DNA of 33,930 bases from Octopus sinensis. Lineage: Eukaryota. The notes under the pieces are model-generated. The model was not told the DNA's origin. It saw only the letters and a program-made list of their open reading frames with translations, and did no database searches. The position numbers and the translations under genes were made by a program. Numbering within the stretch: position 1 is the first letter of the stretch; the number at the start of each line of letters is the position of its first letter. Positions 1 through 30,790 of this stretch are shown here, piece after piece. Location of the stretch: assembly GCF_006345805.1 (NCBI RefSeq), contig NW_021831920.1, forward strand, positions 1 through 33,930, given 5' to 3'.

Positions 1-2445
1 GTGTTTAGAGAAAGCTCGACCCGAATAACAAAGCAGACCATTTTGACAATATACAATCCACAAATTGGCAGTCCCTACGATTTAAGCCACCCCCTTCAGG
101 AAGTGGGGACACAGGATGGAGGGTTGAATTCCGACCTTTGGATGTATATATCTTAATAATAAAAGGTATGGTGTGTGTCTGTCTGTCTGTCTGTCTGTGT
201 GTCTGTCTGTCTGTCTGTGTGTGCACACCAACTTCAAATGGCAATACGATGTCCTCGACTTACATGATGAGGTCCTTAAACCTTCCCCCCCAAAAAAATT
301 AAAAAAAATTTTCTGCATTTTGGTTAAAATGAACAACTACAATGTCCTCGACTTACATGATGAAGTCCTTAAAACTTCCCCCCCAAAAAAATTAAAAAAA
401 AATTTTCTGCATTTTGGTTAAAATGAACAACTACAATGTCCTCGACTTACATGATGAAGTCCTTAAACCTTCCCCCCCAAAAAAATTAAAAAAAATTTTC
501 TGCATTTTGGTTAAAATGAACAACTACAATGTCCTCGACTTACATGATGAAGTCCTTAAAACCTTTCCCCCAAAAAATCAAAAAATTTTTTTCTGCATTT
601 TGATTAAATGAACAACGCGAATGTCCTCGACATTCATGATGAGGTCCATTAAAACCTTCAAGGCAAAAATCTCACGTATTAAGAATATCCTTGATGAAAA
701 CGACAGCGAGAATATTAACAATGATGAACTCCCAATTATTCGCGATAAAGAAATTCAATTCATCCTATGTTTTTTCTCTTAAAATTAAATGCATATATCA
801 TTATCGACCATGAATCAAAATTAAAGCTATTATCATATTTGACTTTGACAGAATGTGCAATCACAGATTGCACGACTTTGAATAGAGTGTGCAAGTAACA
901 GATTTAGAAAAAAACCACTTTGATAGTTGAAACCACATTAGCACAATCATTAACCAATTTACCACCAATTGACGCACGACCTTGAATAGAGTGTGCAATT
1001 AACAGATTTTGAAAAACACTTTGATAGTTGAAACCACATTAGCACAACCATTAACACAATTTACCACCAATTGACAGCGCAATCAGAAGAATTTGCGTAA
1101 AAATATTAACTATTTACTTGAGTTTTTCGTAAAGATAGAATTTATTTTCGGTATGCCTCTTTTCCTAAACTTTTTTATTATTCAAAAATAATTTTTTAAA
1201 TAGATAACCGAAGGAGGAAAAACGAAGCTGAAGAAAAAACGGTCAGCTTAATAAGGTAATTAATTAAATCTTTTTTGTGTGTCGCTTTTTTGTGTGTCGC
1301 TTTCTTGCCTGCCGCATCTCTGCCTGCCGCATTTCCGCCTGCCGCATCTCCCCCTGCCCCATTTCCGCCAGTAAAAAATAAAAAAAGAAAAAAAAGGAAA
1401 TTACAAAGGAAAAATGAAAAAATTAAATATAAAAAAAAATAAACCACAAAAAATGAAAAAAAAAGTTTGCAATGACAATAAACAAGGCCCAGGGACAGTC
1501 ATTAAAGGTAGTTGGGTTTTATTTTTAGAGTGAGTGCTTTTCACATGGACAGCTGTATGTGGGATGCTCGAGGTAGGCAGAAGAGAAAATTTATTCATAT
1601 ATGCCAAGGAAGGACGGACGACAAACATCGTTTATCAACAGGCGATAGAATAGGGTTACATTAAACCAGGTAGTTTTATACATCTACATAAACTTATAGT
1701 TGTTTGATGAAACAGGCCCTCCGCAGGAGCTAGGTCGCGGTGAGCGAAGCGAGCTGCCGAGCTAGTATTTAATATATAGGTACAAACTACTGACTTTGAG
1801 AATTCGGCTTTTGTGTTTTTTGTGATTTTAATTACACGTGCTGCTCTCTCTTTGGGGACTTGTGGAAGGTCAGTGGACTTTCGGGTGCCCATATCAAAGG
1901 TGACCCCTCTGAGGTCATTTATTCAGGTGGACGAGAATATGAGCAGATCTGTACAGAGGGATGCAGTGGTGGATCAAAAGTTTTATTTCCGACTGGACTC
2001 GCTAAATCCGACGAGAGAATATTGCAAGGAAAATATAGTGGAGATGTCGATTGATGAGATTATGAACGGAAGTGTATATTGTGGTGTGATCGTGTGAGTT
2101 TAGACACGTTTTTTGGGGTTGATTGAGTTTATAAAACAATATATCACCACTCATCCTGACGTGGAGGCGTCCACGTTTTGTTTGTTTTCGAAATACCTCA
2201 AGTTATTGTCTGGAAGGGCCTCAGGGAAGTTGATTACTGGGGCTAAGTTGATGGGGGATTTTATTTTGTCTCATCCTGACTATAAAGGGGACTTTTGTGT
2301 GGGTGAGTCGGTGGAGTATGATTTGTTGGTTTTCCTCAGAGATTTGACTGACGAATTGGTTTCTCCAGAAAATTTTTTTCCGGATAATAATTTGTCGCGA
2401 GCGCAGCGAGCGACCGAGCGCAGCGAGCGACCACTCAATTTCTAG
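1..2445 (+). CDS. GCLC: Glutamate-cysteine ligase catalytic subunit, 3' half. Exons <1-143, 1780-1899, 1927-2073, 2104-2391, plus a TE-derived extension to 2445
   Basis: Spliced translation DHFDNIQSTNWQSLRFKPPP..GWRVEFRPLD|VQTTDFENSAFVFFVILITRA..DFRVPISK|VDENM..RDAV..KFYFR..MSIDEIMNGS|..GLI..YLKLLSGRASGKLITGA..FILSHPDYK matches the eukaryotic GCL catalytic family. GT-AG introns at 144-1779, 1900-1926 and 2074-2103 preserve frame. One probable missing A near position 11. Confidence 0.95.
171..222 (+). repeat. (GTCT)n/(GT)n microsatellite in the Helitron 5' region
   Basis: Seen directly; a shorter counterpart lies at about 20729-20756 on the minus strand. Confidence 0.95.
248..655 (+). repeat. 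~93-bp tandem array (~4.4 units) inside Helitron copy 1
   Basis: Unit (g/a)atgtcctcgacttacatgatga.gtccttaaa.cttccccccaaaaaaattaaaaaaaattttctgcattttggttaaaatgaacaactac starts at 248, 341, 435, 528 and 620. Confidence 0.95.
871..1075 (+). repeat. ~104-bp tandem duplication inside the Helitron
   Basis: cacgac(t/c)ttgaatagagtgtgcaa...ttaccaccaattgac begins at 871 and 975; also duplicated in copy 2 (about 19575-19775). Confidence 0.9.
1466..1653 (+). pseudogene. Helitron Pif1-type helicase C-terminal remnant
   Basis: FAMTINKAQGQSLKVVG..FSHGQLYVGCSRVG..TTNIVYQQAIE* with a frameshift; these are helicase motifs V/VI. Confidence 0.9.
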
Positions 2446-4420: not shown

Positions 4421-4499
4421 AATTACTCATTTTTTTCAAATAATAATTAATTTAGCTAAATAGACGCGTTAATGAAGTTTATGGAAACAATTATTATGC

Positions 4500-6470
4500 A
4501 TGGATCGACGTAAGAAAGCTTTTGACTCAGTGAGTCACGAATTTCTTTTTGAAGTTTTGGAAAACTCAGGACTACCTAAATGGATAACGAAATTTATGAT
4601 GTCAATAATTCCTAACTGGAGAGTGTCGTTAAGATTAGGAAAAGAGCTGCTTGGAACAGTTAATATTGATCGTGGTATACTCCAAGGTGACTCACTGTCA
4701 CCACAGTTATTTGTATTGGTCTTGGATCCATTAAGCAGGATTTTATCTTTAAAATATCCGAGTATGTCAATCAATACTGGTGAAGACAAGTCCTTAACTT
4801 TTTCTACCAATCATTTTCTATTCATCGATGATTTGAAGCTTTTTGCTCAGAAGGAAGAGACACTGGCACGCATGATGGAGGATGTGAACATTTACTTTAA
4901 ACTGGCTGGTTTGGAGAAGAATTTTGAGAAATCAGCGACAAATTGTTATTTGTTGAGGAATGAAGCTACATTAATGGATGGACTAGATAGCTATCGCTCT
5001 CTGGGGGTGCTAGAAGACAGATGCAGTAATGTTCTTAAAGAAGATGTACTCAAAAATATTAAAGAAGAAATGCAAAGCGTATTGGAAGACTATCGGAAAC
5101 TAAACTAAATGCAGTCAATCTATTTAGAGCAATTAATGAGCATGCTCTATCGCTGATTAACTATTATATCGGTCTACTCGATCTGGAACCATCTTGTTTC
5201 GAAGAAATGGACAAGTTTGTCAGAAAGCTGTTGGCTGATTTGAAAATTCACATGAAGCCAGCCTGTAAAGAAAGACTGTATCTGCCAAGAGATACACTTG
5301 GAAGGGGACTTGTATCAGTTGCCTTTAAGGCGGAAAAAATGCTGTTGGACTTCAAAACCAATTTGGAAAGGCGAAAGTTAATCTCCTTGAGAAAAGCAGC
5401 AATTTTGTGGGCCGAACAGAAAAGGAAAACCCATATGGCCACAATCACAGAATTCCTGCATTGTAAATATGGAACAACCACACTCGATGAGATTGCTAAA
5501 TCACTACGTGACTTGCAGATAGAGTCACTGTTGCTTAGTATTAAAAAGAAAAGGTTGCATTCGAAGCTATTTGAGTCGCTTGAGAATAATACTTTTGATA
5601 TCCCAACATCTTCAACATGGCTAAAGAAAGGGAATATATCTCCTAAATCTGAGGCAATGTTCTCTTTTCTTCAAGACAGAAACGTCTTTTTCAGAAACTC
5701 TGATGAAAAATGCCCACATTGTAAATCCTCGCCTAAAACCGTGGACCATCTTGCGACGCGATGCAGTAGAATGCTAAATTCAGATTATACCAGAAGGCAT
5801 AACGAGATTGTGAGGTGTGTTCACATGCACTTGTGTCGGAGATTTGGAATGAAGAAGTCCAAGAGACTGAAAAACCACTCCGTGCAGTGTATAATGTCGA
5901 ATAGCTCTGCGGAAATTCGGGTCGATACTACAATTCCAACTGAACTAAAAATACAATATAACAAGCCTGATATATTCCTGTATGACAAGAAGGAAAATTT
6001 GATATGGATCATTGAAGTGGGTGTTACCTCGATAGATAATTTGAAATCGGTGGAAGTGGAAAAAATGCATAAATACGACATTCTAGCCAGTGAATTACAA
6101 TTAATTCACAAGGCTAAGGTAAAGATTGTACCGATTGTCCTCACGTGGGATGGGATAGTCTCTACATTCTTCAGAAAATATATGGACCTTCTTAAAATCA
6201 AAGAAAGTGTGCAAGCATACATCCAGACTGTTAGTTTGAAAAAACAATGGAAAGCATGATAGTAGAACACAAATTGGCTTCGAAAATATGTCTACCTCAG
6301 GTAACTCATTTGACGAAGGACGGAAATCGGTGAAGAGACGGCGAGATTCTGTAGTTTCCGCCGATGAAGGAAACAACTCCGAAGTGGGAACAGATAGCGG
6401 GAAGAGGATTCCGAGAGTAAACTTGGCGGAGCAAACTAATATGGAAAAGGAAAGTTAATTAGTTAATTAA
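4500..6470 (+). mobile_element. 5'-truncated RLE-type non-LTR retrotransposon (R4/Dong-like, R2 superfamily)
   Basis: RT motifs KAFDSV, ILQGDSLSP and FIDDLKLF; ERLYLPR..GRGL; CCHC knuckle CPHC..TVDHLATRC; RHN; restriction-like endonuclease KPDI..IIEVGVT..K..KY. Frameshifts fall at A-runs near 5065 and 6240. Confidence 0.92.
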
Positions 6471-7300: not shown

Positions 7301-8621
7301 TTAATGATAGGAATTTCTCAGTTCGTTGATGATCTTCAGGAGGGCTTCCGAAATTGTGTCCTTGAGACACATGGAATCCTTCAACGTTCGCTTGTTCAAT
7401 AAGAGAAACGATTGTCCGTCAAAATGCTGGGATCTCAGCACGGGAGCCACATTCCGGCATTTCGTAGACTCGATGTACTTTATCAAATTCTCACAGGACC
7501 AGTCCCGTGGGTCTTTTAGTAGGGAATTTGTATTTTCCTCAGAAAGTGGCAGAGTTTGACTACATTCGATTTTTCTCTTAGGTCTGGAACAGATCTCAGG
7601 AATTGAGAAATTTTTTGTACGTTTTTTGGATTTTGGAATTTTGGGGTTGCCTTGTTAATTTAATTTATTTAAATTTACATATTAAACAAGGTTTTTCTGA
7701 TAAATCGACGAGGGATCTTTTAATTTTAGACACAATTTGAGTAGAAAGTGACTCAGTTGTCCCGCAAATCACAGACCTCAAACTTGTGAAAACTGTCGAA
7801 TTTACTGTTTATTAAGTACATAAATTTAAAAATACTTTTTTACGGATATCTGATTGAACTGGTTAAATCTCCGAAAACACTTAAAATTTCATTCAGACGT
7901 TTAAAATTTGATGTACATTTAAGGATATACTCCTTTAGTGACTTAAGGACCATACAAATTGGCCCAGGTCCAATTATTTTGGGAATTCGAAGTATTTCTG
8001 ACACATAAAGGTACTTCCCTGAGTAGCAATGAGCATTAATGAAGATCTCAGGACTCCAAAGGTCCTCAATTCTCCTAATTTCCACGTGGTCGTCCAACAT
8101 ATTTGATAAAAGGGCTTTCAACAGTATACTTCTATCTTGTTCACATAGTCGTGGCAATTGTGGCTGACTGAGTGGATAACTGTTTGATTCAGCCCACGCA
8201 AAGGGGAGGATTTGAGGACTGTAGATAGAATAGATCAAAGTCGATTCCTCGTTTATTTTGACAAAAATCAAATGTCCAGCAACTTTGAGGATTGTTGCTG
8301 GGCAGACACTTTGATTATTTGTAGTCGTAGTTCTTTAGGAGTATCAGCAGATTGTCTGCCTGGGAAGACTCGTCGTTTTGTTGCTGGGATTAGGACTGGC
8401 TGATACTAAAAATTTGATGATTTTTTCGAAGGTTTCTCGCAGTTTTTTGCGTTTATCTTTGTAGACGGAGGGGTGGAACTTTGGTGGGTCTCCTGATTTG
8501 AATTCTGAGTTAAATAGTGTTTTAAATACTTTCCTTTTAAATTAGTATTTTTAGATCGGTATTGTTCTGTTGGGGCAATACAATTTCCATTTCTTTTCGT
8601 TTTTAACTGTTTTTTGCACAA
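7301..8621 (-). CDS. Scm/SFMBT-like Polycomb protein (MBT + SLED + C-terminal SAM); 5' part unresolved
   Basis: MBT: SVCPATILKVAGHLIFV..SPQILPFAWAESNSYPLSQP. SLED: IFINAHCYSGKYL..RIPKIIGPGPI..VL. SAM: DPRDWSCENLIKYI..LRSQHFDGQSFLLL. The 28-nt intron at 7651-7678 restores frame into the SAM domain; a probable 31-nt intron lies at 7805-7835. One in-frame TAA (7840-7842) and unresolved frameshifts upstream of 8330. Confidence 0.8.
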
Positions 8622-10538: not shown

Positions 10539-13247
10539 CAGCGGTTCTCTATTGCCGTTCTTAGGAGGGACAGTTTGGAGATCCGTCAAGCCGCTCCCCT
10601 TCCCCTCGGCTAAAAGAATAATTAATTATCATCGTTGGTTGGATGGTTAAAATAATTAGATCATAAATTACCATAAATTGATTTGCTTTTTTGTAAATCT
10701 GTATTTTCGAATTTAGATTTAGTTTGTGCGGGTTCTTAGAGTAGGACATTTACAAGATTTTGGTATTCACTGTCATTTTTCACGTAACTTAAAGTATTGA
10801 GACCAGTGTTCCCTCTAAGCGAGTGGTAGCTATGCGCGCTGGGCACATTGCATTGTGCAGCGTTATAAAGTGACGTGTGCAAAAAATTTTGGGGGGGGGA
10901 AATTTTACAATTAAAAAACCAATGGTTAAAAAAATAGGTCTAGTCAATTGGATATTCTCTTCTGTTTTTATTTTGTATCCAAAATTTGTATACTCGATCA
11001 AGATCCACTGTATTCCCACTTGTTAAATAGAACTTGATTCGCATGATCATCTCCAAATGGTCAATCTCAAGTCTATTACGTAGTTTAGTTTTGATACAGT
11101 TCATCAAACTAAATCCACGTTCAGCATCAGCACTCGACGCTTGAAATGTGCCACAAATATCCACAAATGTTGCAGTGGCTGAAAATTTTTTCTCCGCTAG
11201 TATATAGTAAATTACATCTTCAAATGTTTTCAAAGCACCAGAGTGCAGTTTTTCTTTTAAAATAAACTTGAGATCTGTATATTCCGACTGCAGTTTTATG
11301 AGTGGGACTTCTGAAGAGAGTAAATTTTCATATTTTTTCGCTAATTTAATTATCTCCTCTTTTCCAAATTCAAAGTTTGTCTGATTTTGAATTGCTTGAG
11401 TGTCAAATGCTACCCATTCTCTTAATTCGTCAGCTGGAAATCTTTCTTGTAAATGCAGATAAACATGCTCGATAAAGCATAGGATTTCATCTGTATTTGT
11501 ATCTCCATAACCAGTTGTTGATAACAACATCTTCACACTGTCACTCCAGTAAATTTCATTTCCATCCAAATATTGAGATTTCAGCTTCGAAATTTTTGCT
11601 CTGGCAAACTGTACAGCTTCTATGGTCGATATACAGCTTCTTTGGAAAACTGTTCACAAATCTGCTAATTCAGCCAAAATTTCATTTAAGACAGTTAAAG
11701 CAACATGAATAAGAGGATTTTGAAGTTGTTTTAAGCAATATTTTGCAATCGGATCATTATCATCTTCAACCTGTTTCTTGAAATATTCAATTAAAATTGT
11801 GTAGTTTTTTATCAAAGCGTTAACAGCAAAATGCCGAGACACCCATCTCACTTCATTTAGTGGCTTAAATGAAACGACATCTTCAACAACAACATTAGCC
11901 AGGTCCTGAAATGCAGCTTTTTTTATACTTGATCGACTGAAAACAGTATAAACAGTCCGGAGTAATATTTCAATATTTTTCACAAGATTATTTTTTTTCC
12001 ATGCATCATCGAATATTATACTTTCTACTGCGCAGAAAAAAATTTCGCTGCGCAGCAAGGTGCAAACTGCTGCGCGGCCGCGCACGCGCGCAGCTTAGAG
12101 GGAACACTGCTCGTCAGGGCCAGGTTTAGACATGTTCGAATATTTATTATAAAAATAACATGAACATTATGAAAATAACAGAAAATTTAATAGTAATTTA
12201 GTGAGATTTCTGATCTTGTTTGCTCAGAATAATTTTACTTATATCAGGCTCTATGTTCGACAAAGCTACTCGCATATCATCTTGTACCCGTAGTCTATTT
12301 CTATATTTTGTTTTTAGAAAAGTCAGACACGACATCGCCATTTCACAGTGATAAAGAGTGGGGAATGCAAGTATTGATTCCAATGCAGTTTTACTCAAAA
12401 TGGGGAATTCTTTCTCCATCTGACACCTAACAATAATAAGTAATTATTAATGAGAATACCAAAAATCTAATAATGAAGTACATTTGAAAATAATTGGAGT
12501 AGACTGATTACATTGAAGTTCAATCAAGCTCTGCTGAAAATTGAGTTCCTGATATTCTTTAAATGAGGTCAAGAAAGGTTGAACGATCCAGTTTGGAATT
12601 GGGTCTTCAACAGGAAAATAATCATCAAATTTTGTCTTGAGATTTTCCAGATGTTTGATTATCAGACTTAGAAGAACATTATCCGGTGGGTTGTGTCCGA
12701 GATGATATTCAAGCATTGGGAACATTGATGTTATTCCTTTTTTTATTTTCATTATCCACAATAATAACTTTTTTTAAAAGCCATTATTATTTGATTGACC
12801 TCGACAATTGATATATAAAGACCTTTAAATAAATTAATAAAAATTTTACCCTGCATTGACAAATTAAACTCATTTAAAATGTTTAAAAAATCGGCAAGAT
12901 AATACATTTTCGATTTAAAAGTAAAATCATCGAATTGGTCGGCCCAATCATGCTGCATATTATCACGCAAAAACAAAGAGATCGCAGGGGAAAGTTCACA
13001 AATTCTCGAAAGGATTTTCCCCCTTGAAAGCCACCTAATTTCAGAATGATAAAGTAGTATAGAATGAAAATTCCTGGGGACCACTAAAAATTTTCTGGGG
13101 ACCACGATTGAGAACCGCTTGATTAATTTCAATGTTTTTGATTTATACTTAATTGTACAATTAGTTTTAACTTTAATATATTTTTATTTTTCGAAAATTC
13201 CTGGGGACCACTAAAAATTTTCTGGGGACCACGGTTGAGAACCGCTG
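10539..13247 (-). mobile_element. hAT transposon, Charlie/Buster (ZBED8/SCAND3-like), internally deleted, with two tiny introns
   Basis: CAGCGGTTCTC termini at 10539 (+) and 13247 (-). Transposase pieces LLYHSEIRWLSRGK..YLADFLNILNEFNLSMQG, LLDFW|CQMEKEFPILSKTA..TYHCE-like..KTKYRNRL..DDMRVALS..QKSH*. The 8-bp flanks do not match, so the left boundary is less certain. Confidence 0.8.
10804..12109 (-). mobile_element. Second hAT family (ZNF862/C17orf113-like transposase, 5'-deleted), nested in the Charlie-like element
   Basis: Perfect 17-bp TIRs CAGTGTTCCCTCTAAGC; VRWVSRHFAV and hATC dimerisation motif ASSADAERGFSLMNCIKTKLRNRL; no 8-bp TSD found. Confidence 0.88.
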
Positions 13248-13547: not shown

Positions 13548-16500
13548 TAAGTAATTTTACTAACTAAGTCCAGAGCCTTCGAAGTGAGCAGAAGGCGGCA
13601 CTCCACGCACCTCCTCCCCTTCTTCCTCCTCTTCTCTGGCACTGTAGACCTTCGAGAAGGTGCAGTCCAGCGCCTCTTGCTGACTAAACGTCAGGAAAGG
13701 GCTGGATCGGCGAGCATCAAACGAGACACTCTCCAGAGTCCTCTTAAGAACAGTTGACTGTATATAAGCCTGTAGAGACTTATCTACATCCAACTGTCTT
13801 AAGTACCGCTTGTGGTATTTGGTGACCAGTCCATCCCATGTCATCACACACGGGATGACATGGACTTTGCACTGGTGCATCAGTCCTAGCTCGTTTGCAA
13901 GGAGGTCATACTTCCTCCTTTTCTCCACTTCCACTATCTGCAAACGGTCTAGGCACGTGATGCCCACCTCCACGATAACAATCTCCCCGGTGACCTTATC
14001 GTGGACCACAATGTCGGGTCTGTTGTGCTGGACAACAATCGAGGTGCGTATGGGGGTATCCACCTTAATGCACACCCGCGAGTTCTCACACACCGATTGA
14101 ACTCGATGGGTTCGCAACTTTCTGGACCGCCTCAAGCCGTACTTATTGCAGAGCAAAAGATGGAGGGACCTCACCACCTCGTTATGCCTCCATGTGTAAT
14201 CATGGTAAAGCATACTCCCGCACTTCGTGGCTAAATGGTCAACGGTCATTGCCTTACTCTTACAGTGGTTACACTGTTTCCGTTGACCATTAAAAAAGTT
14301 TCTATCCTGCAAATATGAGAACAACCCTTCTGATCGGGGAGAGTTATTCCCATATTTCAGCCACGTAGATGACGACGATACGTCAATGTGCGGGTTGTCC
14401 AGGCTGCTAAAGAGAGTCTTGTGAAGGACTTTTAAGTTGATCTTTTTAATTAAAGACTCCTTTTGAAGTTTGATCAACTCCTTCACATTAACTTGGGTAG
14501 CACCTAGACCATACTTAGCCGACACATAGCCTTTTATGGTCCCTAGGTGTGTACCACGCGCTTTTTCAGCAGCAAGGATGGCAGCCTTCCTTGGGATACA
14601 CTCGACCCACTCCACAAGGTGTCGTGCATCTTAGTAAGAATTCGCTCACTTAAGTGTACGATGTTACTCAGTCCACGTCCTAGCTGCCCGCGAGACAAGT
14701 ACAATCTCTCCTTATTGCTTGCCAACACGTGGACATGATTCTCTCGGAGTACTCTTCGGACAATAAGGTCCATTTCATCGTACTCACTCGGCTCGAATTC
14801 GATCAGGCCAACGTAGTAGTTTAGCAATGAGATGGAATACTCGTTCAAGGCATGAAATAAGTTCCGTGCATTAAGCCGAGTCTTACATAACATTGCCGCC
14901 CTACTACGCACACCCTCCACTACACACTTTCTCGTTTCGGGTGTGATTAATGAGGCTGGACTCTCAACCACACCAAGATACTTATATCCTTGGTGTTCCT
15001 CCAAGACTTTGACTAGGTCACCACAAACAGGGGTGTTAGTCGCCGACTTGTTGTAATTGAGCTCCAACCCCACGGCCTTCATGAAACCTTTCAGGACTTT
15101 ACCCATTGAGTGAAGGATCTCTGAAGACCGAGCGAACAGCTTAATGTCGTCTATGAACATGAGATGGTTGGTGCTAAAACACCCTCCTCCATGTTCGATC
15201 GACATTTGTTCGAATTGGGCAGTGAGGACTCTACTCAGCGGTTCTAGGCAGAGGACGAACAGCAGCGGAGACATGCTGTCGCCCTGTAATATGCCCCTCT
15301 CTAGTTTCACCTCGCCTATATCGCATTTGTTGTAATTTAGATGGACGTTCCACCTGTCCATCACAGTTGCAACAAATTTGATAAACCACATTGGCAATTT
15401 AAGCCTTCGCAGACACTCAACGAGGTAGGCATGATCAACCGAGTCATATGCCTTCTTCACATCCACCCACATTGACACTAGTGAGTTTCCGTGGGCTCTC
15501 GCGAGACATTTGTTGATCAGTGCCTGCTCCTTAGCTCCCTGGCAATCCCGCCGAGTACCTAACTGGTTCTCGGACAGAATCCCATTCACCTCCACGAAAT
15601 TTCTGACCTCAGTAGCCACCACCTTAGTCATCAACTTGTACAGGTTGGGCATACAGGTTATCGGACGATAATCTGTCGGAGCGGAAGGGTTATCTACTTT
15701 AGGGATCAAATAAGTGACCCCAGTACATAACCACTCTGGAATCGAGCCAGGGTCTAGTGTAAACTGTTCGATTGCTCGACACATGCAATCATGGATAGGT
15801 TTGCAATTTTTAATAAAGAAATTATACACTTTATCGACCCCAGGTGTCTTCCAGTCAGAGAGACGGTTTACTGCTTCATCGAACTTCTTGCGGATGTCAG
15901 GGACACCACAAGACTCGGTCATCAAGGGAGCATCGGGTCCACAAAACGGAAACGACACACCCTTGCGAGGACGTGCTTTCCACATACTCCCCCATGTGTC
16001 AAGCATTTCGGCCTTTTGCTGGGTACCCTCCTTCGTCTCTCCGTGCAACCGACGATAGAACGACCTGCGATTAAATTCAAACAGGTTGTTCTCCCGCCTG
16101 CGCTGACACCGAGACTCATGAGTTGAGAGCTTCTTCTGATAAACGAGAATCAGCTCCTCCCTCTCTGCCCGGACACGCCTCAACTCGTTGAGGTCCCATT
16201 TGGCAGCTCGTTCCCGACGAAGTAAAGTACGCACCAAGGGGGGAGTCTTGCCCTTGACCCCATTGCTCACATTCAAAATGTGCCCAGTCAGCGCTTCCAG
16301 CTCGGCTTTCCTTGCGGCTACTTTTGCGGCAATGTTTTCTCTCCATCTACTCTTTGGGGCAGGCCTCTGAGTGATTTCATCATAGGTTGTCTGTGCCGAG
16401 TACAAATAAGAGAAATCTCGTCCATTGTCTCCGGAGGCTCACGCACGATCGCGTAAGCTATGGCACGATTGATGCAACCCATCACGTCACTTCTGAGTTG

Positions 16501-17308: not shown

Positions 17309-18420
17309 CAGTAAAGTCTCTCGAATCCGCCAATTTCGGGGATCGGCAAAATCTGGCGGATTCGAGAGACTTATCGATTTTTTAATCCATTAATAATTTA
17401 AATTATTAAGCCAAAATAATTAATTAAAAACAAAAAAATCAGCAAGTTTCGACTTGTTTCTTCTTAGAGTTTGGATCATTGAAGATCCAATGTTTTCAAT
17501 ATACTCAAGATTTTCTATATTAAAGAATTCTTCTTGATTATAGAACTCTTTTAATTTGTTTAAAGCGATAAAAGCCTCGTTAATGGTAACAACTTTCTGA
17601 CTTTGTTCACACGGTTCTTCGCTAATTTCTTGTTCTATTTTTTCTGAATTATTTAATTCAAGTTCTTCACTTTCATTATATTCAATCTCAATATAAAGAC
17701 TTTCTTCTAACGGATCAATAATATCCATTTTTTCCAGAATATTATCATAATTTTCAATTAAGGGATTTTCATAATTAATATTTTCATTGTTTTGAGTCCA
17801 TTTTGCATGAATGAAACAATTTAAAATTAAGGAACTTCTATTTTGTTCCAACTTTTCTATTTTGTTTCGAAATTCTTGAAACATCTTGGATTTTTAAACA
17901 ACCCAATTAGTAAGGGTGTTCGCTTATCTGTACCGTCAACATTTGTACATAACATAACAGAAACTCTGTCTTTCAGGACTTTATAGCCAGATTTAATGGT
18001 TTTACAAACACTCTTAGACGGTATCATTTTGTAAAATAAGCCAGTTTCATCGGCATTATAAACATTTTGAGCTCCGTAAAGACTGATTTTATTTTTGATT
18101 AATTCAATGAAATCTGATACTAAATTAGGGTCAAAATTTGGAGTTGCAGATTCTCCATGCATATTACGTAATTTCAAACCATTCCTCTTTTTAAATTTAA
18201 CTAACCACCCTTTGCTTCATTTGAATTCAGTAATCCCGAGATTCAATGCAAAGGCTTTTGCTTTCTCAGTAATAATCCTATCATTTAAAATGGCTCCTTT
18301 AAGATCCATTGAATTGACCCAAGCAATAGTATTATCATCGATTTCAGCAACTTTAAATATTGTTTGCGGGAAATGTCAGATCTTAGGTTATGAAACATAA
18401 TGTTAGATCCTCTTTTACTT
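17309..18420 (-). mobile_element. Tigger/pogo (DDE_1) transposon, internally deleted, one TIR visible
   Basis: TA|CAGTAAAGTCTCTCGAATCC at 17309. HTH-CENPB FK*SKGWLVKFKKRNG and YNADETGLFYK..KDRVSVMLCTN; later catalytic motifs deleted; acidic C-terminus 17420-17884. Confidence 0.85.
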
Positions 18421-18679: not shown

Positions 18680-18812
18680 GTTTCTTATCTTTATTTATTT
18701 ACTAGCTCGGCAGCTCGCTTCGCTCACCGCGACCTAGCTCCTGCGTAGGGCCTGTTTCATCAAACAACTATAAGTTATGTAGATGTATAAAACTACCTGG
18801 TTTAATGTAACC

Positions 18813-21489: not shown

Positions 21490-24400
21490 CAGTGACTCCT
21501 CTGAAATTGGCCATTTTCGGTTCCACGTGTTTTTGTGGTCAATTCGAGAAATGGCCAATTTGAGAAATAAAACCAATCTTTTGTGTAAATAAATTTTGAA
21601 TAAGAACAACTTTTATCCAGAAAATTTTAAGTAATTAAGCATTATTAATGTTCTTTAAAGTAGAATTGGATGCCCATCTGCTTTTTTGAGTTTTAATGAC
21701 ATTTTCCTTATAGCGCCTTATGGATGTAATCAATTGAACTTCATGTTCGTTCTCAATGTTTTTAGGAGCTCGTTTTCAATTTTAGTTAACTTAACCACAA
21801 TGTCTTCTTTGTCAATTGAATCATTGGATTCTACTTCAGCTTCTACTTCTTCTTCATTTTTTATATTTTCAATATCCTCAACGTCTTGAAATGTATCATT
21901 TTCAGAATATTCAAAATTAAGAAATTCTTCGACTTCTAAGGGATCAAAAATGTCAGTTTTTTCTACTGCAATATCTTGAACTTCAACTACATGATTCTTT
22001 TTGAATGGGTTGCTAAAATTCCGAAAACAATTTAATATCGTTTTTTCAGACACATCTTCCCAAGCATTTTTACGAAAATTACAGTATCCTTTAGAGTTAA
22101 CTTTTTGTAGGAACTGTATACTGAAATATTTTGCTGTTCCAACAAATCAGTCAAATACATTAACTTGTGTCGAGTAAAATGTTGTTTTAAATGTTTTTAT
22201 TATACACAAATCCATAGGTTGAATAAGACCAGTACTATTTGGAGGAAAAAACAATATTTTTATGTTATCCAAATTTGATGGAACACAATGTGAAGGACAA
22301 TTGTCCATGAGAAGTAAAATTTGCTTTTTTTCATTTTTGAGATGGTAATCAAAGTTTAATAGCCAGTTAGTAAAAATTGTTCCTGTCATCCAAGCTCGTT
22401 TTGAGCTATAATAATCAATGAAACATTTATAGTCATAAGATTTAAAGCATCTTGGCATTTTAGGTTTCGAGATCATCACAGGTTTCAATTTATGATTTCC
22501 ACTCATATTTGAACATAGCATAATAGAAACACGATCTTTGAAATTTTTATATCCTTGAAATCTGTTTTTACAAATATTTCTTCGAAGGAATCAGCTGTAA
22601 TACAATCCCGTTTCGTCCAAGTTATAAATTTGATCGGCATTATAACTCTTTGATATTTCTATGAATTTTTCGATAAATAAGTCGACATCTACTGGATCAT
22701 TAGTTCTCATTTCTCCATGTAACTTGGTCATTCGAAAACCATGCCTCTTTTTGAATTTATGAAGGTATCCATTTGAGTTTTTAAAATTATCCAGTTTTAA
22801 TTCAGCTGCGAATAAATTAGCCTTATTTGAAATTAAAGCATCATTAAGAAAGCCACCTTAATCATAAATTAGTACAAATTACCTTTAGACTCAATCGAAT
22901 TTTTTTGTTGAGGTGGCGACGTACCTCTCTTGCACAATGTCTAAAACACACACAGTACAACCGGACAGGCTATCAATTCTATCCTTTAACGTTCGTGGAC
23001 TATGCCAGACCTGGAAACAACAAGCACTCTGTAATGACATGGATAAATATCGTGCGGACATCGCCTGTCTACAAGAGACCAAACAAAAATCTGGAATGGA
23101 CCTAACCTATGGAAATTACCGAATGATCTTTTTACTCTCCGACTGCAGACACTATGGACAAGGTTCTGTGATTCACAAGAGGCTCGGTGTCAAACGCTGG
23201 TGGAGAATTACAGATAGGATTTCAGCAATCCAAGTACAAATCGGCGGTAAAGGCAGGCCTAATGCAGTCGCAACGGTCATTAACGTATACGCCCCGCATA
23301 GTGCCAGAATCGTCAACGCTCCTGAAGAAATCGATGAATTCTATGAGGTACTGACCCGGACATACCTATCCTTACAATCGTCTACCCTCCTGCTCGTCGT
23401 CGGCGACTGGAACGCCAAGGCTGGCATCCGTCGAGGCACTGAAACTTTTATTGGACGGCACGGAAGAGGATATAGAAACCTCCCAGGAGCCCTATTGGCT
23501 AATTTCTGTAAAACACTCGGGCTATTCCTATGCAACACGGCCTTTGATCACCCTGCTCGGCACAAGTCTACCTGGACTGGCAGGAGACGTGGTGAAGACG
23601 GGAACTATGTGCCGATCTACAACCAAATTGACTACATTGTGTGTCGCCAAAGAGACACATGGGTTCTACAAGACTCTCGTTCTTATGGGGGCTCGGTCGT
23701 TGACAGTGACCACAAGATAGTCATCGGCAGATTCAATCTGAAGAAATTATATGTGCTGGACAAAACAAATCGTCAATTCCCTCATAAATCGGACAGATAC
23801 TTGACAGAAAAACTGGCTTCCTCACTATCGACTCGAAACCTCTATAAATCATCCATCGATGAATCCCTTAAAAACATGGAATCTGAACTTATGCCTTCAG
23901 CCGCTTGGAAGGTAATGTCAGCCAACATTCACTCGGCGGCAAATAAATATGTTGGAAAGCAGCCAAAAATACGCACTCTATCGGGCTGTGTCACCCGGAT
24001 GCTCTTGCCTTGTCAGTTGTGCAAAAGGAGCTTAAGCTGAGGACTGAGAACACCAAAGATATGGATACTAAACTCGCACTGAAAGGCCGGCGTGCCGCCA
24101 TCCAAAAACAAATAAGACCCTAAACCTCCAATATGGCCGGGATATCCTGGCTTCCCGTCTTGGAGAACTGGAAACCCTCAAAGATAATGCACGCACGTTT
24201 ATGGCTTTACGGTTGCTTAAGAGGAAGAAAAACCGCCCCAAACTTCGACTCCAAACCAGTAATGGGGTTCAATGACTTTCTGAGACAAAGTCAATGACTT
24301 TCTGTCACCGAGTCACAGCGGGTTCAAAGAAGGACGTTCAACCGCAGATGTCTTTGAGGCCACCGATGGCGGTGTGCAACCCACCAAGATACAAAAGTGC

Positions 24401-25954
24401 CACGAGAATCCTGGGTATCGATATGTCAAGAGCAATCCATCGCGATCTCCTCATGAGGGTTCTACGGAGTTTCTTAGATGAAGATGCTATCAGAATGATA
24501 CAGGTCTTATTGGCAAAAACGGACCTCACTGTTCGCCTTGGGACAACGTCGTCCAGATCCTTCCCAACAAATGGGGAACCCCCAAGGAGACTCTCTCTCG
24601 CCTCTGTTATTTGTGATCTACCTTGAGGCTGCTTTACGAGAGCTGAGAGGTCTATATGACAAGTCAATAACTGAAGTGATTTTACGCTGACGACGTCGAC
24701 TTTGTGTCCAATGACAAATCCGCCCTACTCAGACTATTGGAGATTGCACCGGATAAACTTGGAGAATGGTTGTTAATCATGAACACGGACAAGACTGACG
24801 TGGTCGATGTATCACGCTCAGAGATCCCAAACTATGGAAAAATGAGACTTTCGAAGAAGCTTGGCTCTCTGCTTGGAGACCGAGAAGACATCATGCGGAG
24901 AAAACTACTGGCCGCTGTTGCTCTAAAATCCGTCATGAAAGATTGGCTACGATATTGTCCCGGGAAACCATCACTACGCTCTAGAATCTACAACGCTTTT
25001 GTCAAACCGGTACTACTGTACAACTCATCTACATGGGGCATCTCTGACACCGAACTAAAGAATCTTGACTCGTTTCACAGAAAACAGCTTCGCGTCCTAA
25101 ATGGCCTGCATTGGCCTAAGAAAATTAACAACTCATCGCTCTACAAACTCAGTAACTCGGTGCCAGTCAGCCAGGACATCATAGATGGCCGCTGGAGGCT
25201 CTTCGGACACGTCCTGAGAATGGACCCGTCCTCACCTGCTTACCAAGCCATGGAAGAGTACTTTCTCTCGGATAGCCCAAAGTTTCGCGGACGTCCCCGC
25301 ACAACACTGCCGGTTGCGCTGGAACACGATCTGAAACACGTGGGCAAAACCTTGAAACAATGCGAGGACTTGGACGAACTGCGATGGCTTGCACAAAACC
25401 GCAGAGGATGGCAAACGATGGTTAAGAAGATTGTATCGTGTGTGGCACGTGTGGGGATATAACTCTTTCCTTTCCTTGTTTATGTTCCTACGGGAAGTGA
25501 TAATAATAATACTCAATCGAATCCATCCATTCAACTAACATAGCATCAAGCTGTGGGAACTTGAGTCTATGCGCATTTTTTGAAGATAGATTTTACACTC
25601 TTTGAGAAAAAAATCTTTTTTCAAAATAATATTATTAATTGTTTTTCTGGAAATCTTCTTTTTAACAAATGGGAAAATCTATCAGCCAAATACTGACATA
25701 AAACATCTTCATTTTGATTTTTATAAGTTAAAATCAGTATTTTTTGATAAAAAGTGAGACGAGTATAATTACCACGAGAATTGTTCGAAGACATAAAATA
25801 ACTGAAATTTTATTAATTTGCAAATTATATAAAATATATTTTAAAATTTATGGTCAATTTGAGAATTGGCCACTTTCAATGGAAATTCGAATTTTTCTTA
25901 GATAATTTTATAAGTGTGGTCAATTTCAGAGGTGGCCAATTTCAGGAGTCACTG
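21490..25954 (-). mobile_element. Complete Tigger/pogo-like transposon with a 26-nt intron, interrupted by a LINE
   Basis: TA-flanked TIRs CAGTGACTCCT(CT)GAAATTGGCCA. Transposase from about 25790 (MSSNNSRGNYTRLTF..FPQLDAMLVEWMDSIE) continues after the LINE with SK|GGFLNDALISNKA..SNGYLHKFKKRHG, LDETG, MDNCPSH and IQPMD. Confidence 0.92.
22901..25510 (+). mobile_element. RTE-type LINE (APE + RT), 5'-complete but internally deleted
   Basis: 12-bp TSD ACTCAATCGAAT (22889-22900 and 25511-25522); (TAA)n tail. APE motifs SFNVRGL, LQETK, NVYAPH, GDWNAK, QIDYI, DSDH. RT motifs (P)QGDSLS and ADDVDF. Sequence jumps from QTSNG to (Q)SGFKEGRST near 24270-24310. Confidence 0.93.
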
Positions 25955-29794: not shown

Positions 29795-30790
29795 GTGTTA
29801 CTTATGTCGCGTTCTTTTGTAAGAGATATGGATGAGTATCGATTGCTAGAAAAAGTTTTAAATGGACAAAATATCGAAAATCAATCGAGACAAAAAGTTT
29901 ACTGCCTTAAAAAGAAAGCTGAAAAGTTCATTTTAATCAATGGAAGAATATACCTCAAACAGCCGTGTGGAAATCACAAATTAGTGATTTCGACGGACAA
30001 CGTTGACAAGATGAAATTGGTGGCTAGCCAAATTCGTTTTGCATTGTGGACATAACACTCTCGAGAACATGTGCCATGAAAGATATTTCACTGTAAAACG
30101 ACAAATAATCCGAAAAATTGTTGCCGATTGTGAAATTTGCAAATTTTCAACTCCCTTGAAACTAGGGGATGAAGAAAATCACGTGATTGCCAATCGTCCC
30201 AATGAAAAATTCCAGATGGATTTAATTGATCTGAAGATGTATCAATTTTTTGTATTATATATTAAAGATTTAAACAAACAAATAAACTATAGCATGGCTT
30301 TTAACGGTTATTGACGTCTACTCGAAGTTTGCATTCACTCGAAACCTAAAACATAAAAGCGGAATTGACGTTGCTGAAAATTTCAAAAAAATTTTTCTAC
30401 GTTTTGGACCGTGTCAATATTTGCAATCGGATAATGGAACTGAATTCAAAAATCCACATGTCACTGCCTTGTGTGTATGTTTCAACATTCAACAGATACA
30501 CAGTAGGCCAAACAATCCGAGAAGTCAAGGCATCATCGAGCGTTTTAACCAAACGGTTACGAGGTCGCTATCTAAAATGATGGCTAATGATGAAGATAAG
30601 TGTTGGACGAAGTATATAGATGAAGCTGTTTATTTTTATAATAAACAGCTTCACTTGCACTCAAAAAATTTGAAAGTCCATACGGAGAAGTTTGTACAAT
30701 AAGTGAAATCCTCCCGCATAATATGGTCAGAGTTGAAATGGACGATGGAACTACTAAGAAGACACTTATGAAAAGAATTAAAAAAATTTA
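29795..30790 (+). mobile_element. Ginger/GIN (KRBA2-like) integrase-type transposase, frameshifted; termini not found
   Basis: H2C2 HCGHNTL..VADCEIC; QMDLIDL; WLLTVIDVYSKFA; QSDNGTEFKN; SRPNNPRSQGIIERFNQT; W..YI..AVYFYN. Confidence 0.88.

Follow-up and report, generated by a model that had tools for sequence, protein, structure and literature searches.

A putative 24-26-nt intron in a pogo/Tigger transposase family on a contig filed as Octopus sinensis

The window analyzed here is the entire contig VCDQ01009320.1 (33,930 nt; assembly GCA_006345805.1), which is filed as Octopus sinensis. It carries a copy of a pogo/Tigger DNA transposon (copy A) whose transposase frame is interrupted by a 26-nt GT..AG segment on the minus strand. 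Our analysis points, with a probability of about 85%, to a genuine U2-type GT-AG intron, the sole intron of this family, which was gained once; the host appears to be a metazoan with tiny introns, most likely a dicyemid, and the window copy itself is dead. The element belongs to a ~1.9-kb pogo/Tigger family that uses TA target sites and ends in CAGTG.. inverted repeats. Splicing, which would take place inside the HTH_Tnp_Tc5 domain, is predicted to join a 99-codon exon 1 to exon 2 and to give a transposase of 502-517 aa. The unspliced RNA would encode only a ~103-aa protein, retaining the N-terminal helix-turn-helix (HTH) region.

Copy A is divided into the following parts (a slash marks the predicted junction or the element end).

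21490-22856, minus strand: exon 2, 3′ untranslated region (UTR) and 3′ terminal inverted repeat (TIR) of copy A, with the rest of HTH_Tnp_Tc5, DDE_1 and an acidic C-terminus; the TIR ends ..GGAGTCACTG, then TA.
22857-22882, minus strand: candidate intron of the pogo/Tigger transposase, 26 nt, GT..AG, phase 1, in the Gly codon aaa g/gt ggc.
22883-22900, minus strand: last 18 nt of exon 1 of copy A, encoding SIESK and supplying base 1 of the interrupted Gly codon; a target-site duplication (TSD) has one of its two copies at 22889-22900.
22901-25510, plus strand: long interspersed nuclear element (LINE) inside exon 1 of copy A, which has an APE endonuclease, the remnant of a reverse transcriptase and a tail of TAA repeats.
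25511-25954, minus strand: 5′ part of copy A, with the TA/CAGTGACTCC.. TIR, the 5′ UTR and exon 1 from the ATG (25794-25792) to ..LVEWMDSIES.

The segment GTAATTTGTACTAATTTATGATTAAG runs from 22882 to 22857 of the minus strand, bordered by tctaaag on one side and gtggc on the other. It occurs once in the window, and the expectation from shuffled sequences was 0. When the frame was read unspliced, it gave ..SIESKGNLY and then TAA. When the 26 nt were removed, it read SIESKGGFLNDALISNKA.. and continued into the Pfam domains HTH_Tnp_Tc5 and DDE_1. The 26-nt GT..AG interruption at AAAG/GTGG, with the unspliced frame stopping at TAA and the spliced frame running on, had been proposed in an earlier sequence-only reading and is confirmed here, as is the assignment to a pogo/Tigger transposase, which the two domains, the TIRs and the TA duplications bear out. 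AGGT is present at both junctions of the segment, and TACTAAT within it is a possible branch site. At the predicted join, exon 1 ends ..GAGTCTAAAG and exon 2 starts with GTGGCTTTC or GTGGTTTTT, and the junction-spanning peptide of the spliced transposase is predicted to be ..SIESKGGFLNDALISNK.

The sequence-only reading had also placed the residues MD next to the segment, which does not hold: the Tigger sequence directly upstream of it extends for only 18 nt (SIESK), and the MD is 2.6 kb away. The intervening 2.6-kb LINE, inserted 18 nt upstream of the intron, is bounded by a perfect 12-bp TSD, ACTCAATCGAAT, at 22889-22900 and 25511-25522. The remainder of exon 1 (..LVEWMDSIES) is found at 25511-25794. 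In a BLAST comparison with the full-length copy L001, element positions 462-1882 matched window positions 22900 to 21472 and element positions 31-473 matched 25945 to 25511. The termini of copy A were recognized as TA/CAGTGACTCC.. at 25954 and ..GGAGTCACTG/TA at 21490. Relative to the intact copy L008, exon 2 of copy A has two TGA stops (after YYS and after VFD) and frameshifts, and its 5′ part has frameshifts and a small deletion. Copy A is a dead relic, split by a LINE and unable to encode anything.

Other copies were then compared. Nine loci were reached via protein matches, six of them with full-length copies (L001, L002, L003, L007, L008 and L009). If the 26 nt were a private insertion in a dead copy, as the sequence-only reading had allowed, copies lacking it would be expected; the segment was present in 6/6 other full-length copies. 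Including the window, a GT..AG segment lies at the identical base of the same Gly codon in 7/7 full-length copies. These copies fall into two subfamilies, which differ in the segment as follows.

Subfamily 1 (~97% identical to the window), L008: the same 26 nt.
Subfamily 1, L001: 25 nt, one T less.
Subfamily 2 (~71% nucleotide and 61% amino-acid identity), L003, L007 and L009: GTATTAATTGAAAACCAATTTTTAG, 25 nt.
Subfamily 2, L002: 24 nt.

Because the same site is interrupted in all full-length copies of two subfamilies, the interruption is far beyond chance. The terminal GT and AG are invariant in 7/7 copies, and every segment starts with GTA. The interior, on the other hand, needs three gap blocks in the alignment between subfamilies, whereas the adjoining 60 nt align without gaps at 63-70% identity. 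The segments are 24, 25 or 26 nt long, with a 1-nt length difference between subfamilies. A further locus, L004, was uninformative, since its internal deletion ends at the AG of the intron.

The coding capacity of the copies was examined with the segment retained or removed. Excising only this segment gave a single open reading frame (ORF), uninterrupted between its ATG and its stop codon, of 517 aa in L008 (contig VCDQ01011782.1), 502 aa in L009 (VCDQ01000373.1) and 509 aa in L003 (VCDQ01010770.1), and no other defect was present across 1.5 kb in these three intact copies. Without excision, ORF1 stops 3-4 codons into the segment (~103 aa). HTH_Tnp_Tc5 (PF03221) matched the spliced protein at residues 82-142. 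This match spans the junction, takes in profile positions 1-64 of 66 and scores 45.9 bits, compared with 34.5 bits for the exon-2 fragment alone. A CENP-B_N match to the spliced protein was weak and below the curated cut-off. DDE_1 (PF03184) was matched with E=9e-34 in the window copy and, as a full domain, with 1.9e-41 in spliced L008; the acidic DDE triad is kept in the motifs NLDETG, LMDNCPSH and QPMDLG. TIRs with a TA target-site duplication were found in the window copy (25954 and 21490), in L001, in L008 and in the subfamily 2 copies.

Between the subfamilies, the ratio of nonsynonymous to synonymous substitution rates (dN/dS) was 0.13 (0.17 for exon 1 and 0.12 for exon 2), with synonymous sites saturated (dS ~2). 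All insertions and deletions (indels) in the coding sequence between subfamilies are multiples of 3. Within a subfamily the copies are very young: of 1506 coding positions, 4 distinguish L009 from L003. Copies also have TA duplications and intact TIRs. L001, like the window copy, is plainly dead. A defect in a dead lineage would not show such a pattern. The subfamilies diverged over a long time, and the segment was compatible with a working transposase throughout. The shared segment, the intact frames predicted after splicing and the purifying selection together form the signature of an intron.

We were also interested in whether relatives of the family carry the interruption. One relative lies in the window itself.

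17309-18420, minus strand: Tigger copy B, from a different pogo family with 46% amino-acid identity; its DDE domain is deleted internally.

At the homologous site of copy B (AAAG/GAGCC, between 18297 and 18296), the sequence is uninterrupted and reads NSMDLKGAILND. The gapless alignment upholds the earlier claim that this related Tigger has no intron at the equivalent site. P0006, a protein that carries the label Dictyocoela muelleri, aligns without a gap across the junction and likewise has no intron; its identity is 50% over 337 aa in the pairwise alignment and was 49% in the database search. The intron is also lacking in P0007/L006 (43%), whose DNA at the site is GCGG/GTGGA, and in L005 (53% amino-acid identity). 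L005 (1-70, Logan SRR33639317) is the nearest relative outside the "octopus" contigs, and shortly before the site its frame is shifted by 1 nt within an A8 run. P0006, P0007/L006, L005 and copy B all have the same number of residues across the site, which means that the intron was inserted and did not arise from coding sequence. The comparison places a single gain after the split from the intronless relatives and before the split of the subfamilies. The gain would have occurred at AAAG/GTGG, and the length would since have been held at the host-typical 24-26 nt.

The sequence-only reading had taken the gain to be recent. This was not borne out, because the intron is common to two subfamilies whose synonymous sites are saturated, and it thus predates their split at dS ~2 and is old within the family. 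The AGGT repeat at both junctions, which had been read as a sign of insertion, was found in both subfamilies. It fits insertion at a proto-splice site, but it is not diagnostic, since one of two tiny introns in a host gene of the same window, the glutamate-cysteine ligase catalytic subunit gene GCLC described below, has it as well (AAAG/GT...CAG/GTGG).

As to the way of gain, an AGGT proto-splice site may have taken up ~22 nt of filler DNA, for example during repair of a staggered break, and the AGGT may have been duplicated at the same time; the event would be part of an ongoing process that generates tiny introns, as the sequence-only reading had proposed. We regard this origin as conceivable but rather doubtful. 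It would account for the AGGT at both junctions in both subfamilies, and for the intronless relatives that read ..G/GTGG or AAAG/GA at the same protein length, as expected if the segment was inserted; a nearby hAT ORF also appears to carry two tiny introns. However, the gain is older than a deep subfamily split, the host GCLC intron has the same AAAG/GT...CAG/GTGG arrangement, and the intron could equally well have been gained longer and shrunk later. A donor was searched for and none was found in the element itself or in the window. The best matches within the own element (17/26 and 16/25) were no better than those of shuffled introns, and origin by tandem duplication or from local filler was rejected on this ground. 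The intron is also not repeated in the manner of Introner elements: in the ~100 kb of genome sequence compared, one window match was found at <=3 mismatches, and the intron of subfamily 2 had no match there.

Several points weigh against the conclusion that copy A and its relatives carry a spliced intron of a dicyemid transposon. The splicing of the segment is inferred from DNA. No junction-spanning protein was found among 5.8 billion sequences, and a search with the reconstructed N-terminus brought up no more than three models, all from O. sinensis, which did not extend over exon 1. The window copy has no coding capacity. DNA transposons can be moved in trans, so that young copies alone are no proof of an own transposase. 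The assignment to Dicyemida is drawn from intron size, divergence, GC content, the MBT and SLED domains and the association with octopus.

Alternatively, a small insertion could have killed a master copy, and the lineage could since have been non-autonomous, moved in trans by another transposase, with nothing being spliced. Such trans mobilization of DNA transposons is frequent, the window copy and L001 are dead, and the spliced product is not on record in the 5.8-billion-protein search. However, a dead lineage would drift to a dN/dS of 1 and accumulate frame breaks, whereas the subfamilies sharing the segment diverged to dS ~2 at a dN/dS of 0.13, with constraint in both exons, and three copies are otherwise free of defects over 1.5 kb. 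Moreover, the GT and AG ends were kept in 7/7 copies while the interior changed through indels. We consider this explanation improbable.

The likely host was addressed through a conserved gene at the start of the window.

1-2442, plus strand: GCLC fragment, the C-terminal part of the glutamate-cysteine ligase catalytic subunit, with introns at 144-1779, 1900-1926 and 2074-2103.

Two GCLC introns are tiny GT..AG segments, one of 27 nt (1900-1926) and one of 30 nt with two in-frame stops (2074-2103). The earlier claim that the transposase segment is of host length was thereby supported. The third intron (144-1779) is 1636 nt long and filled with repeats, among them a tandem repeat of ~60-nt units (~240-640) and a dispersed-repeat fragment; it looks like a tiny intron inflated by insertions. 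Once the introns were removed, the protein aligned without gaps to bivalve GCLC at all three junctions. Its best match among 5.8 billion proteins was 52% identical, and no close cephalopod orthologue was found. Because GCLC has 27- and 30-nt introns and no match above 52%, the real host appears to be a metazoan with tiny introns. The octopus, in which a 26-nt intron would be implausible, was dropped as the host on the same two observations. The MBT and SLED domains, which are restricted to metazoans, are also present in the window, its GC content is 36.3%, and its repeats recur in the flanks of the other "octopus" loci. The top protein matches are all named Octopus sinensis.

These features agree with what is published for dicyemids. 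The Dicyema japonicum genome has a GC content of 36.7% and 49% repeats, and the specimens sequenced came from O. sinensis, its natural host (PMC6736024). Dicyemid introns have a mean length of 26.2 +/- 1.9 nt (PMC2222250) and a median of 27 nt (PMC6543705), and their splice signals are reduced to GTa and AG (PMC13644364). Dicyemids and myxobolid myxozoans are the only animals in which introns below 30 nt are known (PMC13644364). The transposase intron has the properties of the dicyemid type (24-26 nt, GTA start, AG end; PMC2222250, PMC13644364). It is probable that the octopus assembly took in dicyemid DNA and that this contig and the related loci stem from it. The host would then most likely be a dicyemid (Dicyema) from the octopus kidney and not the octopus of record. 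Searches of the literature turned up neither transposon introns described from dicyemids nor an account of dicyemid sequences contaminating the octopus assembly.

An alternative is that the contig is genuine octopus DNA and that the Tigger family was transferred horizontally from a parasite with tiny introns, bringing an intron that the octopus cannot splice. The contig and at least 8 other loci are indeed deposited as O. sinensis, and three NCBI models (P0068, P0071 and P0003) join the intron acceptor to far-upstream exons. However, the GCLC gene of the window has the 27- and 30-nt introns itself, is at most 52% identical to any known GCLC and has no close cephalopod match; the loci and the window have other repeats in common; and the chimeric models look like the work of a predictor that is not tuned for tiny introns. 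Parasite-to-octopus transfer was thus rejected for these loci on the GCLC introns and divergence and on the common repeats, and we give it little credence beside a dicyemid host. The three models, at L009 3001-11061 and L002 3001-4216, start an exon at the tiny-intron acceptor AG/GTGGTTTT and join it to unrelated exons kilobases upstream. They are probably chimeric products of a pipeline not tuned for 25-nt introns.

The last alternative, that the interruption is overcome in translation by ribosomal bypass from GGT to GGT (giving the same K-G-G product) or by programmed frameshifting, is very unlikely: the repeated AGGT does place identical GGT codons at take-off and landing, but bypass is very rare and nothing besides the repeated codon supports it, no frameshift window exists because in subfamily 1 both frames are closed within the segment, that of ORF1 at nt 11-13 and that of ORF2 still at nt 21-23, and splicing is the simpler account of GT..AG ends and a host-typical length in a host that removes 27-30-nt GT..AG segments from GCLC.

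The family was compared with known systems. Like other pogo/Tigger elements of the Tc1/mariner superfamily (Drosophila pogo, human Tigger, fungal Fot1), it has an N-terminal HTH, HTH_Tnp_Tc5 and a DDE_1 core, with short TIRs starting CAGTG and TA target duplications. The Drosophila pogo transposase also needs one short intron to be spliced out. The present intron differs in being only 24-26 nt long and in lying inside the Tc5 HTH, and P0006, P0007, L005 and copy B, the closest relatives compared, have none at that site. It resembles the ultra-short introns of dicyemids in its length class, in the minimal GTa...AG signals and in an A-rich stretch before the AG (PMC2222250, PMC6543705, PMC13644364). 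The published introns of dicyemid host genes, however, have been described at conserved ancestral positions, whereas the transposase intron is lineage-specific and lies in a mobile element, and for these two reasons it is regarded as a gain.

Other comparisons bear on gain and regulation. Introns gained in the manner seen in Daphnia are flanked by short direct repeats at proto-splice sites. The transposase intron is similar in its AGGT direct repeat at both junctions and in being an insertion relative to intronless homologues. Unlike Introner elements, it reflects a single old event, and its sequence is not repeated elsewhere in the window or in the element. Some transposase introns, P-element IVS3 among them, give rise to a truncated repressor when they are retained. 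Retention here would likewise leave a ~103-aa protein with the N-terminal DNA-binding region only, which is how transposition repressors are classically built. The likeness to a P-element repressor is an analogy only, since nothing here shows regulated or incomplete splicing.

For its likely host the intron would be ordinary, as the ultra-short introns of dicyemids have been known since 2007, and introns in transposase genes are common. It would nevertheless be a well-supported, lineage-specific intron at the lower size limit of animal splicing, and the comparison of copies of a multi-copy gene gives unusually clean evidence at the DNA level. We suggest tentatively that transposons in this genome are clean recorders of intron gain, with new introns still being created, or quickly trimmed to a 25-33-nt optimum. 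The suggestion is based on the pogo intron, which its relatives lack, and on the candidate 32-33-nt introns of a hAT element in the same 34-kb contig. If true, introns would be created or trimmed in a lineage for which only the shrinkage of inherited introns is otherwise known. Equally tentatively, a retained pogo intron could self-limit transposition through the ~103-aa DNA-binding fragment, and splicing might serve the host as a control on transposases, as the sequence-only reading had suggested. Transposon ORFs thus offer a tractable way to ask whether genomes with tiny introns still gain introns.

The filing of these sequences also matters for other work. VCDQ01009320.1 is probably parasite DNA under an octopus name, and at least 8 further O. 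sinensis contigs look alike, the loci L001-L004 and L007-L009 among them. About 17 RefSeq proteins (XP_029653941 to XP_029657973), annotated as "tigger transposable element-derived protein 6-like" or "jerky protein homolog-like [Octopus sinensis]", are copies of both subfamilies. These proteins are probably parasite sequences, a reading that is direct for those on the contigs compared and by extension for the other members of the cluster. Misfiled contigs and proteins of this kind could lead to wrong conclusions on cephalopod transposons or on horizontal transfer.

The sequence-only reading had proposed tiny introns in two further transposon superfamilies of the window, hAT and Ginger. The hAT case looks real, and the Ginger case could not be reproduced as GT-AG.

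12427-12768, minus strand: C-terminal region of a hAT transposase, with candidate introns at 12768-12737 (32 nt) and 12459-12427 (33 nt).

In this hAT remnant (13183-12190, minus strand), removing both GT..AG segments joins three ORF pieces into one frame, which ends ..KQDQKSH and a stop, a typical hAT C-terminus. For the integrase (rve, "Ginger") junction at ~30230-30300 on the plus strand, there was no clean GT-AG solution joining both frames. The integrase ORFs at 30015-30311 and 30286-30699 (plus strand) overlap in different frames, which may reflect a frameshift in a decayed copy. The whole window was also scanned blindly for GT..AG segments of 18-45 nt joining long ORFs. This gave 43 and 67 real matches against 35-110 decoy matches; the scan has no statistical value and served only to choose candidates for inspection.

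Other parts of the window were also noted. The ORFs at 7304-8334 (minus strand) with MBT, SLED and SAM-like domains resemble a very divergent Scm/SFMBT-like Polycomb protein; this gene gave no clean splice solution as a second source of host introns. A near-identical sequence of ~100 nt, ccaggtagttttatacatctacataa..gagctgccgagctagta, is found at 1667-1768 (plus strand), within the long GCLC intron, and at 18700-18800 (minus strand), beside Tigger copy B. It represents either the end of an element or a dispersed repeat of no assigned class. Reverse-transcriptase ORFs lie at 4476-6256 (plus strand) and 13563-16438 (minus strand), each followed by a CCHC motif and a PD-(D/E)xK-like region (..HCKS..VDHLATRC....PDI..IIEVGVT..). 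Both look like non-LTR (long terminal repeat) retrotransposons with a restriction-like endonuclease. The ORF at 13563-16438 is GC-rich (47-51%) compared with the contig average of 36%.

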